A stretch of 64,000 bases of DNA from Trichoplax adhaerens (GCF_000150275.1 NW_002060952.1:2351128-2415127); one strand, 5' to 3'; positions 583 through 11,386 are shown, counted from the first letter of the stretch. Notes: generated by a model from the sequence alone, not told the origin. Translations and numbers: made by a program.

Positions 583-872
583 ATGACTTATCCTTTCCAT
601 TTAGTAGTAAAGCAAGGGCGAGCCTACTTGAATATTAGATGGGTTACAATTATTCTTGTCTTTCTCCATCTTGCAATACAGACTGAATCGGCAACTTCTC
701 TTAAGACAGCACTATCTGATGTAAATGGAAAGTATAATCCAAAGGAGTCTCATCATCAGATTATTGGCCGGCAGTGTGATAGAAATAACCTGATCAACAA
801 ACATGTTACTACCTTACAAATGTTGCTTAAACATCACTACAATTATTTAAGATGGACTTCAATTGGAAAAAT
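583..872 (+). CDS. Probable first coding exon of the receptor (signal peptide and N-terminal region)
   Basis: ATG at 583 is followed by a hydrophobic signal-like stretch. The strong donor AT|GTAAGT at 872/873 (phase 2) matches the phase-2 acceptor at 5882, giving SIGKI-VLSDKELDCNC, an LxxLxLxxxxLxCxC pattern leading into the LRRCT. Confidence 0.72.
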
Positions 873-3800
873 GTAAGTTTATGACATAAAGTAAGAATTT
901 CTTCTAGTTACGAAATAAAATCTTTTCTAATCACCGTTATTCTCACAGTTTGATTACATTCGAATAATCGTTTCATCACTTTTTTCTCTAATAATTGCAG
1001 CAGTAAATTTTCGATTAAAGTCATCATTCTCTGATGAAATTTTCTAGAGTTTAGAGCTAGAGAAATGCGAGAATATAACTTTATGTTTTTGATTTATAAG
1101 ACTGGGCTAGTCATTTCTAATTGGCATTTAATATGAGTGCTAAATTACATCAATCGCTATAAAGGACTATTTCTCTTGTACTACTATCGTTACTGAGTCT
1201 AGATTTATTTACATTTTATCATCATTCATCATTCCAATAATTATAATTGTTATATAAAATTATGCCTAAAATCGTTCTAAGTTAGTCTTGACCGCTATGA
1301 TTATATTTTACATGTTTTTCTTAATCTTTCATGGGCAACTTTGATGCTTGTAGTAGATCTATTTCTACACTTATAGTCAAGCCTAATGTTGCTAGGAAAT
1401 ATTTAAATGTAAAAGTTGAATTTAATAGAACCAAGAAGCATGTTGTAATGATCTTAGTCATAGCATAAGTTACTCGTAGTTAACGATAACTAATTTCACA
1501 AAATCAGAATAAATTTTGGTATCATGGAACTTATATTATTCCCATTTAGTCGGAAGAATTACAAAAAGTATCGTGCTAAGTTGATCCAATTGATTCCATA
1601 ATTAGATCTACAATTTGTTTCTTGTCCATGTCAGACTGTCGATAAAACCTTTAGCCTCGACTAAAAGTATTTATGTCAATAAACTTTGGCCATAAAGTAT
1701 GCCTGACGATTTTCGGATATTTCAGCTATGAAAAATTTGAAGCAAATTATTTCTAGTCCAGTCCTTCTCATCTATAAAACAAACGTAGCAATAAAACTAT
1801 ATTCATCTGTTCATCCATTCATGACAACGAATCAATATTCAGATCATTCGCGATTGATAAACGTGTAAAAATTTATTTCATATCCTAAAGTTCCATTCTT
1901 GTTTGAACTCTTTATTGCTTGACAGGAAAACTGGTAAAAATTTTAACAAGTTTAAAAGTTCCTTCACGAACATAAAAGTTATCTCACGCTTTTCTTTTTA
2001 TGAACTGTAGAAGGTTCTATTTCAACTATCTTTTATAGGCGATAAATATTATTATCGATATTTATAATATTTCTGGATAGCCAATTGTGAAATTCTGACA
2101 AGAGGAAAATCCTCATAAAATAGATTTGCACTCATTGCGTTTTGATAATAAATCATAACAAATGTTGATTTATTAGTTTTGCTTTCGTAAAATCTCATTT
2201 TCTTTTTTCGTCATATTTCTTAATTGATCACTATCGAAAATGTATTAATTTCAGGCAGTCTAGCGTTTATATAGAAAGACTAGTACACTCCAACTATTTT
2301 CAGAAGCCTGTACGCGATTTTTGAAAATTTCGAATAGGATGTTGAAAGATAGATTATAACCTTCATTACACGTCGACCTCATCACTTGACCACAGATCAT
2401 CGCCTATATCCTTATATTCATTCATAATCATCAGACCGGCCTTCACTATTAATAAGCAGAATAAAACATTATAGAAACTAATGTTATATTTTAACCGGAA
2501 AGTTAATTTTTAAAATTATTTCAATTTGGAAACAATAATAATTGAAGATTCGAAATGGGATGTTCAAGGGTAGGCTAGAACCTTTATTACTCATCGATTT
2601 CATCACTTGACTACCAACAACATTAATCCTATATTATACAGATAAGGATATAATCCATTGTTACTCTCATAACATAACATTAGGTATATTTCCAAGATTG
2701 TTAACTAGACGATAGCGATATGTAAATTAATGTCAGGATGTAGTAGCAAAGTCAATTCTCAAAAAAACTATTAAACAGAATAGAGCGTTATATAAATTAA
2801 TAGTACATTGTAGTCGCAAAGTTAATTTTAAAGTTCTTTCAACTTGGAAATCATAAGAAAAGATTCTAAATAGGATACTCAAGGGTAGACTAGAACCTTT
2901 ATTACTGGAGGATTTCATAACTAGACTACCGACAGCGTTAATATCTATATCGTAGGGTTAAGTATACAGTCCACGATCGTTCGCAAATATAACTTTTATA
3001 ACATCAGGTTATTCCCAAGTATACCAACTAGATGATAGCGATATATAACTTGATGGTGAGACGTAGTAAAGCCAATTTTAAAAAAAAGTTATATTTCTGG
3101 ATAGAAATGTATGGAATTTAAGCGTTTATATTTATCATTCACGGATCATGTCTGAAGTAACTAGAACAATTATCATAAAAACTTCGTTAGGAAAATGATG
3201 TTACAGTAACATTGTTTGCCCTTACTATAAAGTTCGAAGTAGTATAATTTGAACCCAAAAATAGCTTTTAAATGTACTGCTACAGTAATGACTTCTTACT
3301 TTTTGGATATGTACTGCCAAGCTTATTATTTCCTATTAAATCAACCTTTGTGATCTTAAATAAGATTCATTAGAGTAGAATTGGTTGGAACTCGTACCGT
3401 CTATCCCTGTATTTGAAGCAAAATAAAGCAATCTCTTCTAATAGTTAAAACTTGAACTTATAACCGCCTATTATCTTTATGAGTCATGGTAGTAAGAAAT
3501 AGCAAACCGTATGGAGAATGTTTTTTTCCCTTAACAGTTCAACGCGATCATCTTTGACATTTATTATTATTCTAAGAATTAAAATAAGCTCCTAACCCGA
3601 TAGCGACAATTTTCTTTGCCAAAAGGCGAACTAAAGATCACAGCATGTTGTTCTTTAAAACTATAAAGTCTTTTTTATCACTATATTGCAAGATCCCGCT
3701 TGTGATTATTATTGATTGCTAGATGCATTATGAAAAAAATCCCAAGTCTTTTATTTTAACTTAAGATTAACCAGAAACTGAGAGAAGACAGAATTTATGA

Positions 3801-9800: not shown

Positions 9801-11386
9801 CTTGTCATCGTCGTCAAATTGCTTCCGTTGTCTGTCAAAATAAATCAGCTGGTATTTTATAGCAAAACTTAACCATTATTTATATGATATATAGCTTGAT
9901 TATTTCTTTATATGAAATGATTATACTCTTTTTGTTGTAGCATTTACGCTATAATAAATCAATAATTTTTTTTATCCATTTCAAGTTAATCAAAGTGCTA
10001 CCAGTTGTTCATTTGATAATGGTCTGTGTCGATGGAAGGTTAAATCAGGTTCTGGTAACTTACATTGGATTTGGCATAACTCTGGGAGAGAACATTTTAA
10101 ACCGCTACCATCGACGCCAGGTTAATCAATCGTATCTATGAAATTTTAGACATTCATCTTGATATTATAGTAATTATTACACACAAAAATTCAGCTTCGG
10201 CATCTAATTCGTTGGTACCTTTCTATTATTTCTAGATGAAAGCTATCTGTATGTTCTTAAACCTCCTAATGATGATAGGCAAAGTAAAGCAATCTTTGAA
10301 AGTCCTATCCTACAGACCCAAGATATTTATACTGTCAATGTCAGTTTAAAAATTTTGTCTATCATCGTAATACTTTTTGATCTGCTCTATCATGGTATAG
10401 ATTAATGATAGTAATGGATTTTACTGTTTTTACTTTCCAGCTGCAATTCGATCTAAGATTTGAGGGAATTCTAATTGATACACTAGCAATTGAACTAGTC
10501 GATGGTCGCTTAGGTCCACGGCAAGTTTATACCACATCGCCGGGTAATGTGCCTCAGCGAGCATGGATCTCAAAGACAGTTAAGCTAAATCCAGCATCAT
10601 CTTCTTACCAGGTTAATATGACATTATAACATATCAGAAATACATAGAATAGAAGCTATCCTTTTCCTACCATAACTATTGAAATATTAATCTTAATTCG
10701 CCCTAAATATAAGCTTCGTCATATATTTAAATTAATCGTCATTATAAATTATTTTCTCTTTTAAAACTTGTAGATTCGCTTTATTGCTTATTCGAATGTG
10801 AAATTAAGATCACCATCTCTTAGTGTCATTGCCATTGATAACATTGTGATTACAGGTTAAAAGATACGAACAGAAACTAAACATCACTGTTGACAGCTTA
10901 TCCTCACATATAGATAATATAGCTATAAATTGGCTTAACTAATTATTAAAACTAATTTATAACTATTTTAGATGAATTTAGCCAATCAATTATCGCCGGT
11001 ATTGGTGCTGGAACGGCTGGGGCTTTGTTAATAGTTACTCTAGCTCTAATCTTGTATGCGGTTTATCGGTCACACGTAAGAAGAAAACAATATGAAGAAG
11101 AAATTAAGATAGAAAATGAGATTAAAGAAATTGCCATAGGTACTCCCTTTGGTGGTGGTAAGTTCATACAACTTTTGCAATTAGGCTATAGCTTTAAATT
11201 GAAACTTGATGAACTATTAAACCATTTTATCTGTTCTATATATCATCCAGTCCTTATATCTTTAATTAATAAGACATTATACCTGATTGAGAATAAAAGA
11301 CTCATTTTCCATATCGCTTTACTTTTATAGGTAGTAATCGAGAAAGATTCAATTCAAACGATTACATGGCTTCGACAAATGTCTAA
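583..11386 (+). CDS. Multi-exon type-I transmembrane receptor: signal peptide, LRR/LRRCT, furin site, MAM, kringle, 2x SRCR (group A), MAM, TM, PDZ-binding tail
   Basis: Hand-built exon chain with GT-AG sites and consistent phases: 583-872, 5882-6042, 6365-6433, 6649-6810, 7264-7370, 7555-7737, 7840-7921, 8032-8331, 8444-8617, 9064-9525, 9666-9851, 9986-10120, 10236-10339, 10441-10611, 10774-10855, 10972-11157, 11331-11386 (TAA), with AATAAA at 11391. Motifs: signal WVTIILVFLHLAIQTESA; LRRCT LDCNCQAQQFIQWARS...CSRPYHLKG...LGC; MAM CNFQVDLCGW...DHTTRT..GSYLYLES...IAIDDVKV; kringle CYTGNG...CQDW...CRNPD...PWC...[13 protein letters not shown] WGTIC...VICRQLG...IWL..IHCQGHETNLTQC; TM IIAGIGAGTAGALLIVTLALILYAVY. 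Confidence 0.9.
2375..3110. repeat. Degenerate tandem duplication, ~315-320 bp period
   Basis: AAGGGTAG(G/A)CTAGAACCTTTATTACT at ~2566 and 2881; GTTAATTTTTAAA at 2502 and 2821; TCAT(C/A)ACT(T/A)GAC at ~2379, ~2600 and ~2916. Confidence 0.8.
4540..5065. repeat. Degenerate direct duplication, ~280 bp period
   Basis: TTCTATTCG(T/A)TTCCGATC at ~4563 and ~4844; ATTAATTTTCTAA...GATA(G/A)AT(T/C)CAAA(T/C)CAGAATAG is repeated. Confidence 0.8.
5083..5670 (+). mobile_element. Solo LTR of an LTR retrotransposon (588 bp) in intron 1 of the receptor gene
   Basis: Begins TGTCAC and ends GTGACA (6-bp terminal inverted repeat, TG...CA). Left flank is ATGAA (5078-5082) and right flank is ATGA followed by N (5671-5674), i.e. 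a 5-bp TSD with 4 bases visible. TATTTAAG at 5437, AATAAA at 5460, and an internal direct repeat TACTAATTAA(T)GTAACT(T)GTAAA at ~5099 and ~5370. No PBS (TGG) follows the CA. Confidence 0.85.
5675..5724. other. Assembly gap (50 N)
   Basis: Run of 50 N directly after the LTR right flank. Confidence 1.
8032..8331 (+). CDS. Kringle-domain exon of the receptor
   Basis: EISCYTGNGSFYIGSQSESEDGLACQDWLDQHPHSHSF...[33 protein letters not shown] has all six kringle cysteines; phase 1-1 exon. Not in the ORF track because it has no start codon. Confidence 0.95.
8444..9851 (+). CDS. Two group-A SRCR domains separated by a Pro/Thr/Ser-rich linker (three exons)
   Basis: Six Cys in each domain; CRQLG motifs; IWLNIDDIHCQGHETNLTQC and IWLSNVTCNGYETKLTDC; linker SSTPYITTPTPTNATVSPTTST. 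Confidence 0.93.

Follow-up and report, generated by a model that had tools for sequence, protein, structure and literature searches.

A 17-exon gene of Trichoplax adhaerens that probably encodes a membrane-anchored protein of the placozoan SRCR/MAM/kringle family

Introduction

What is encoded by the run of short exons at positions 583-11386 of a 64,000-nucleotide stretch of the Trichoplax adhaerens genome (GCF_000150275.1 NW_002060952.1:2351128-2415127), and is the product a one-off or one of many? The whole stretch is called the window here, and positions are counted from its first letter. A first-pass annotation of the window, made from the sequence alone, had proposed a mosaic receptor with leucine-rich repeats (LRR) and their C-terminal cap (LRRCT), a furin-type site, two MAM domains, a kringle, two SRCR domains, a transmembrane helix and a PDZ ligand, and had considered it a candidate for an undescribed system. 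It is argued here that the region is probably a 17-exon, 970-codon gene for a type I single-pass surface glycoprotein of the placozoan SRCR/MAM/kringle family, which would act as a catalytically inert receptor for several ligands. The genome that was searched (G000) comprises 105.6 Mb in 1414 contigs; the window corresponds to C1405:2351128-2415127 and the gene to G000:C1405:2351710-2362513.

Gene structure

On the plus strand, 17 exons between 583 and 11386 can be joined into one open frame of 970 codons plus TAA (2913 nt). The exons were derived from plus-strand stop-free segments together with AG and GT sites and their phases, and the gene model was searched exon by exon. All 16 introns are GT-AG, the shortest measures 101 nt, and their phases are compatible throughout, with no stop in the joined frame. 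Domain borders are marked by phase-1 introns without exception, and the internal introns of the two MAM domains have matching positions and matching phases (1, 0, 0).

Exon 1 (583-872) begins with ATG and encodes a signal-peptide-like core, WVTIILVFLHLAI, followed by about 60 more residues with one cysteine, and ends at a phase-2 donor, AT/gtaagt. With the assembly gap described below filled in, it is the sole Met-started, signal-like open reading frame (ORF) on the plus strand of 1-6100. Exon 2 (5882-6042; phase 2 in, phase 1 out) encodes a putative LRRCT cap, with the pattern D-C-N-C ... C-x2-P ... C, and exon 3 (6362-6433), as read from the sequence, is a 24-codon linker in phase 1-1. At the start of exon 3 tandem AG acceptors (aag/cag/A) form a possible NAGNAG site at 6362/6365, which could add or drop one codon. 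At the other end, exon 17 (11331-11386) enters through a phase-1 acceptor, ttttatag/G, and supplies the last 17 codons with the end S-T-N-V; the TAA at 11384-11386 is followed by AATAAA at 11391-11396, 5 bases 3' of the stop codon.

It is very likely that the region is a single gene of these 17 exons. One transcription unit is indicated by the exon order of the paralogues, by a paralogue (G, below) whose cap exons have compatible phases, by the lack of any other signal-like start upstream of exon 2, and by the six cysteines of the cap fragment, five of them from exon 2 and the sixth from exon 1.

Domain composition

The centre of the protein is the most readily recognised. Exon 8 (8032-8331; phase 1-1) encodes a kringle with six cysteines that matches Pfam Kringle at 6.6e-20 and is nearest to the kringles of plasminogen and HGF, at ~1e-17 per domain. 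Lysine binding of the classical kind is doubtful, since in the alignment with plasminogen K4 an Ile stands opposite the second Asp of the lysine-binding pair. The two SRCR domains follow on exon 9 (8444-8617; first half of SRCR1), exon 10 (9064-9525; second half of SRCR1, a Thr/Pro-rich linker and first half of SRCR2) and exon 11 (9666-9851; second half of SRCR2). Pfam SRCR was matched at 1.5e-7 by exon 9, at 5.4e-13 by exon 10, in two stretches, and at 1.1e-6 by exon 11. With six cysteines each (2+4) and a phase-1 intron inside, both domains are of the group-A type.

The MAM domains needed a different approach. On the exons of the gene Pfam MAM gives one weak match only (exon 6, E = 0.1, positions 75-134), as Pfam is nearly blind to single MAM exons, which are too short and are dropped by the HMMER filters. 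Stop-free segments from both strands of the window, 1935 in number, were scored with a home-made profile of 17 MAM domains, all taken from a giant Trichoplax ORF. Ranks 1-5 went to parts of the two predicted domains (MAM1a, MAM2a, MAM1b, MAM1d and MAM1c) with colinear profile coordinates, and the E values were 8e-5 for MAM1a and 3e-4 for MAM2a. MAM1 is thereby laid out over exon 4 (6649-6810; part a, profile positions 1-42), exon 5 (7264-7370; part b, 43-69, with paralogue matches), exon 6 (7555-7737; part c, 76-132) and exon 7 (7840-7921; part d, ..VIAIDDVKVYPEG, 135-152). MAM2 lies on exon 12 (9986-10120; part a), exon 13 (10236-10339; part b, with phases and intron position as in MAM1), exon 14 (10441-10611; part c, 84-131) and exon 15 (10774-10855; part d, ..SVIAIDNIVITG, 139-151).

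Paralogous exons add to this. Exon 4 matches the MAM1a exon of paralogue A at 1.1e-10, and that exon passes Pfam MAM at 3.5e-9. In a genome-wide search exon 12 matched a MAM domain of the giant ORF on C1404 that is itself positive in Pfam, in its N-terminal part (E = 0.002), as well as the MAM2a exons of paralogues. MAM2b is not among the matches listed in the profile scan; its exon 13 matches MAM2b of paralogue A at E = 0.0014. The end of exon 15 parallels exon 7 and the '..ILAIDDTVITG' of paralogue A. A different segment, 10856-10939, had been tried as the last MAM2 exon and was rejected, as it reads into a stop without a donor; the true exon at 10774-10855 (IRFIAYSNVKLRSPSLSVIAIDNIVITG), with a phase-0 acceptor and a phase-1 donor, was pointed out by the MAM profile scan.

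Exon 16 (10972-11157; phase 1-1) carries a juxtamembrane segment, the predicted membrane helix and the start of the tail. The helix, IIAGIGAGTAGALLIVTLALILYAVY (10989-11066, plus strand), is a hydrophobic stretch of 26 residues, followed by a stop-transfer sequence, RSHVRRK. The tail after the helix has 48 residues, and its C-terminal T-x-V fits the class I PDZ-ligand pattern.

The N-terminal part is the least certain. Exon 2 falls below the Pfam cut-off for LRRCT (E = 0.12). Against the PDB, nine of its 12 best matches are LRR-family proteins (Slit2 at E = 0.033, TLR4/VLR, chondroadherin and CD180), most clearly at their C-terminal caps and at E values of 0.03-1, and against the LRRCT exon of paralogue G the match reaches E = 4e-7 with four cysteines aligned. 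No credible LRR repeat was found by a motif scan of both strands of 1-7000, by Pfam on exon 1, or in the 613 bases that fill the assembly gap. The evidence, weak but consistent, points to a cap module without repeats, consisting of a possible, degenerate N-terminal cap region (LRRNT) and an LRRCT. Behind it, at 6385-6402 on the plus strand, stands a furin-type dibasic motif, R-S-R-R-K-R followed by S-P, which is a predicted cleavage site; proprotein-convertase P domains are encoded in the genome.

Most of what the first-pass annotation had drawn is upheld by these results. The complete 17-exon model with its start and end was verified by coordinates, GT-AG introns and an unbroken frame, and the phase-1 introns at every domain border fit the proposed exon-shuffled mosaic of mostly phase 1-1 modules. 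Exon by exon, the kringle-SRCR-SRCR modules pass Pfam, the two MAM domains of four exons each are supported by the home-made profile and by paralogues, and the furin-type RSRRKR/S motif, the helix and the C-terminal T-N-V can all be read in the sequence. The claimed LRR repeats were not borne out by the motif scan, Pfam or the gap-filling bases. The LRRCT is a putative one, weak in Pfam but consistent with the cap matches in the PDB and with paralogue G.

A family of placozoan genes

The same architecture recurs in the genome of Trichoplax adhaerens, where at least 31 kringle exons were counted, along with a great number of MAM exons and many SRCR exons. At more than 20 loci a kringle is followed by SRCR on the same strand within ~2 kb, and at least 10 of these continue to a MAM2a exon. 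At least 12 family loci stand in tandem at C1414:5.68-5.87 Mb, and others are found at C1414:4.65-4.67 Mb and on C1397, C1399, C1404 and C1282. This census was taken from match coordinates, while six paralogous loci were read in sequence. Exon-by-exon phmmer comparison showed the order MAM1a-d, kringle, SRCR1a, SRCR1b, SRCR2a, SRCR2b and MAM2a onward to be common to the six, and a transmembrane exon follows MAM2 in paralogues A, A2, B, E and G.

Paralogue G (C1414:5851.8-5858 kb, minus strand) is of particular use for the N-terminus. It has an exon with a signal and an LRRNT-like region that ends in a phase-2 donor, AAAAT/gtaagt, as exon 1 does, then an LRRCT exon entered in phase 2 and left in phase 1, then MAM1a with phase-1 acceptors. 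The codon at the junction of exons 1 and 2 is Ile in both genes.

The gene in the window is therefore almost certainly a divergent member of a placozoan family of single-pass SRCR/MAM/kringle proteins, having at least one SRCR, MAM and kringle domain in one frame, one predicted transmembrane segment and the colinear exon order. With the C1414 paralogues and with the family described by Kamm et al. (2019) it has in common the order MAM-kringle-SRCR-SRCR-MAM-helix, the positions and phases of the MAM and SRCR introns, and type I anchoring. It differs from the C1414 paralogues in standing alone on C1405, in being 45-48% identical per exon to the best of them, and in exon 10, a fusion of two exons (SRCR1b and SRCR2a, joined by the Thr/Pro linker) between which the paralogues keep an intron. 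It also differs in its LRR cap, which at least paralogue G has as well, and in its furin-type site, which was not seen in that paralogue.

Kamm et al. (2019; PMC6321704) reported 45 SRCR-containing membrane proteins in Trichoplax sp. H2, of which 21, with 21 locus tags, are single-pass proteins of the type 'SRCR + MAM or Kringle' (their Dataset S3A). They were called putative scavenger receptors, and most of the domain combinations were stated to be restricted to the phylum. The notion of an undescribed, one-off system consequently had to be given up, as a family of at least 20 loci with matching exon order exists and has been catalogued by domain content (PMC6321704). What the first-pass annotation had said of a lineage-specific, membrane-anchored mosaic is supported by the placozoan family, the one predicted helix and the lack of a protease domain.

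Several further loci were noted in passing. A giant open frame (L010, G000:C1404:657001-667000; 3548 aa) consists of some twenty back-to-back MAM domains and one kringle, and lies in a 130-kb region dense in MAM domains, C1404:650-777 kb. A short family member (L019, G000:C1414:4665516-4668165) lacks the second SRCR and the second MAM: its membrane-helix exon directly follows MAM1, a kringle and a single SRCR. At G000:C1414:7060247-7067259 SRCR exons, a weak LRRCT-like match (E = 0.2) and a MAM2a-like exon may mark another relative with an LRR cap. Three consecutive kringle exons at G000:C1410:1398926-1400660 (L020), with no MAM or SRCR exon detected nearby, look like a different kringle gene.

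Conservation and a probable second haplotype

In a related placozoan, an ORF (P0001) on a Logan contig (SRR30664516; L001) matches the fused exon 10 with 78% identity at the amino-acid level. Exons 10 and 11 alone align at the DNA level, and the intron between them does not. Synonymous sites are close to saturation, and the ratio of nonsynonymous to synonymous substitution rates (dN/dS) amounts to 0.056 in exon 10, 0.165 in exon 11 and 0.08 over the two exons together. Judged by these substitution rates, the gene is probably functional, with strong purifying selection on exons 10 and 11 between placozoan lineages.

Exon 10 was also searched against 1.8 billion representative proteins, which gave 1535 matches, of which the best 151 were inspected. 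These are multi-SRCR proteins; three of the 151 also have a kringle, two of them together with a trypsin domain, and none has a MAM domain. The earlier statement that no characterised protein was known with this combination agrees with this search, since none was found among the best 151 of the 1535 matches. No full-length relative was recovered from the representative library and the only orthologous exon was that of P0001. Exon 10 is present in no other protein of the library, so that the full gene seems to be missing from public Trichoplax protein sets; it is apparently an unannotated, new member of a known, catalogued placozoan family.

The only public model that touches the gene in a word search with the LRRCT exon is XP_002118882.1 (TRIADDRAFT_62875, partial). 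It lies on an unplaced scaffold of 2297 bases (G000:C707; L013), makes the LRRCT exon part of a short protein and reads exon 3 out of frame. This scaffold, which holds a second, identical copy of the LRRCT exon, aligns in reverse with the window at 5094-5674 (100%) and 5726-6830 (99.3%), with 613 extra bases between, and probably represents the other haplotype of 5094-6830. The sole exonic difference is at position 6780 (A vs G, Thr/Ala in MAM1a), the remaining differences being intronic.

The scaffold also bridges the assembly gap at 5675-5724, which lies inside the 5-kb intron 1, so that the reading frame does not cross it. The 613 gap-filling bases are 28% GC, have stops in every frame and contain no exon. 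The flanks of the gap are thus contiguous and no LRR exons are hidden in it, at least in the C707 haplotype.

Comparison with known proteins

Neurotrypsin (PRSS12) and other kringle-SRCR proteases resemble the predicted protein in having one kringle followed by group-A SRCR domains. They are secreted and have a C-terminal trypsin domain, whereas the gene in the window has no protease domain but two MAM domains and a membrane anchor. That the product is not a protease is supported by the fact that no exon segment matched a trypsin-like domain and that the frame ends at the TAA. Enteropeptidase (TMPRSS15) combines MAM and SRCR in one membrane protein; in contrast to the product of this gene it is type II, with LDLa, CUB and trypsin domains and no kringle.

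Among receptors, the class A scavenger receptors SR-A and MARCO likewise have a group-A SRCR domain with six cysteines, split by an intron. They are, however, type II proteins with a collagenous stalk and a C-terminal SRCR, while the gene in the window predicts an N-terminal signal peptide, a helix near the C-terminus and no collagen repeat. Neuropilins are laid out as co-receptors: a MAM domain stands next to the membrane, one helix follows, and the tail, which is of ~40-50 residues and not enzymatic, ends in a PDZ ligand. The likeness is one of layout only (membrane-proximal MAM, short tail and PDZ-type end), as the neuropilin ectodomain consists of CUB and FA58C domains; Pfam found neither of these on the exons of the gene. 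The platelet proteins GPIX and GPIb-beta show how small an LRR ectodomain can be, with nearly nothing but N- and C-terminal caps. In these two, one clear LRR and the full set of cap cysteines are preserved, whereas the gene in the window has no LRR repeat and one cysteine in its LRRNT region.

The closest functional parallel could be provided by the class C scavenger receptors of arthropods (dSR-CI, MjSRC and Sf-SR-C), MAM-bearing type I receptors that have been found experimentally to bind and internalise microbes or toxins (PMC5222524; PMC6191154). The layout of these receptors, type I and single-pass with a MAM domain, a mucin-like Ser/Thr-rich stretch and a short tail, resembles that of the predicted protein. 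Class C receptors have CCP (sushi) and somatomedin B domains, for which no exon of the gene gave a Pfam match, and no SRCR or kringle; homology with the gene is not shown beyond MAM. By analogy, they would nevertheless be the best model of how the gene product may work.

Proposed function

The domain order would be signal peptide, LRR cap, RSRRKR/S, MAM, kringle, SRCR, Thr/Pro linker, SRCR, MAM, helix and a 48-residue tail with T-N-V. A proprotein convertase would probably cut the chain during secretion, and the N-terminal cap fragment of 128 residues could be freed or left attached. The SRCR and MAM modules might bind particles, polyanionic ligands or like molecules, while the kringle would probably not bind lysine in the manner of plasminogen. 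Adaptors for sorting, endocytosis or anchoring could be recruited by the short tail, perhaps by way of its PDZ-type C-terminus. A role as a receptor for microbes, food or adhesion may be proposed from this architecture. A scavenger-type working of the product is a tentative suggestion that falls somewhat short of probable.

The same gene structure could instead serve cell-cell adhesion or self/non-self recognition by homophilic MAM contacts rather than scavenging or uptake, and this we consider unlikely. MAM domains mediate homophilic binding or oligomerisation in RPTPmu, meprin and neuropilin, and the predicted protein has two of them, one next to the membrane; its group-A SRCR domains, on the other hand, are typical of ligand-binding scavenger receptors. 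A tandemly expanded and rapidly diverged family, with paralogues at the identities given above, would suit recognition of self, but the dN/dS of exons 10-11 is that of purifying and not of diversifying selection between placozoan lineages, and the polymorphism known amounts to the one Thr/Ala difference between haplotypes. The PDZ-type C-terminus would also suit junctional anchoring.

A more specific proposal concerns the subfamily with an LRR cap, that is, the gene in the window and at least paralogue G. Its members could be proteolytically armed receptors, in which a proprotein convertase, cutting at RSRRKR, would free the repeat-less cap fragment or leave it docked, to act as a tethered ligand or a lid on the MAM-kringle-SRCR ectodomain, and the whole, tandemly expanded family might then be the main surface system for pattern or self recognition in an animal without true TLRs. 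Such a scheme is speculative and improbable as it stands.

Extent of the transcription unit

An alternative to the single-gene model arises from intron 3. A short ORF at 6523-6592 on the plus strand (MKAILLFKMIILIVNS...) is signal-peptide-like and ends in a phase-1 donor, AG/gtataa, that matches exon 4. It may be used as an alternative first exon or be the relic of one, of the kind found in paralogues that have no LRR cap. The region might accordingly be divided into two transcription units, with exons 1-3 coding for a small secreted LRR-cap protein that ends just into intron 3, and with 6523-6592 and exons 4-17 forming a gene of the type usual in the family. Retention of intron 3 would lead to a stop five codons on, and XP_002118882.1 does put the LRRCT exon in a short protein, though its next exon is misframed. 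Paralogue A appears to pass from a signal exon directly to MAM1a, with no LRRCT exon seen, whereas paralogue G independently has its signal/LRRNT and LRRCT exons 5' of MAM1a in the same compatible phases. The fit of the phase-1 donor is offset by the intron that it implies, which would measure 56 nt when all 16 model introns have at least 101 nt, and hydrophobic runs of Ile, Leu, Phe and Lys arise easily in DNA of 30% GC, the composition of the window. Exons 3 and 4, moreover, are in frame. Two units are thus an improbable arrangement, and a single gene of 17 exons is retained.

Some observations do weigh against the gene and receptor as described here. Exon 1 has no detectable similarity, with no Pfam match, no other copy in the genome and no alignment to exon 1 of paralogue G. 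The short ORF in intron 3, being phase-compatible with exon 4, could start a transcript without the cap. The support for MAM consists of scores per exon and not of whole-domain Pfam matches, and two parts of MAM2 are weak in the profile scan (MAM2d at rank 6, E = 2.8; MAM2c at rank 8, E = 5.3). The signal peptide and the helix were read from the sequence, and the PDZ motif amounts to three residues, with a random chance of ~3%. Word searches returned no transcript-derived fragment, and no RNA evidence was found for any junction. On the side of function, the scavenger receptor candidates come without functional data in PMC6321704, and the paper on fibre cells (PMC8639732) tested only cd36.

A pseudogene, or a series of exon-like pieces lined up by chance, is a highly improbable reading of the region, for although the searches found neither a full-length public protein model nor RNA fragments, 17 exons run without stop or frameshift, the splice sites are canonical throughout, and dN/dS is 0.08 against a relative with saturated synonymous sites.

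A word search with the transmembrane exon gave no match, and scans of 1-13000 for Rfam families and tRNAs were empty. Elsewhere in the window, the longest uninterrupted ORF lies at 26255-27547 on the plus strand and encodes 430 aa rich in Ser, Asn and Gln.

Significance

The locus is of value as a sound annotation and as a candidate open to testing, and not as a new principle. It adds a well-defined member, apparently absent from public protein sets, to the family, and it shows that part of this family carries a repeat-less LRR-cap module, which in the gene described here stands ahead of a convertase site. It also illustrates clearly how phase-1 exons are shuffled in an animal of an early-branching lineage. 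To our knowledge, placozoans have no canonical Toll-like and NOD-like receptors, and they feed on and live with microbes. Membrane proteins of the SRCR/MAM/kringle type are among the few candidates for the means by which these animals may sense particles or partners.

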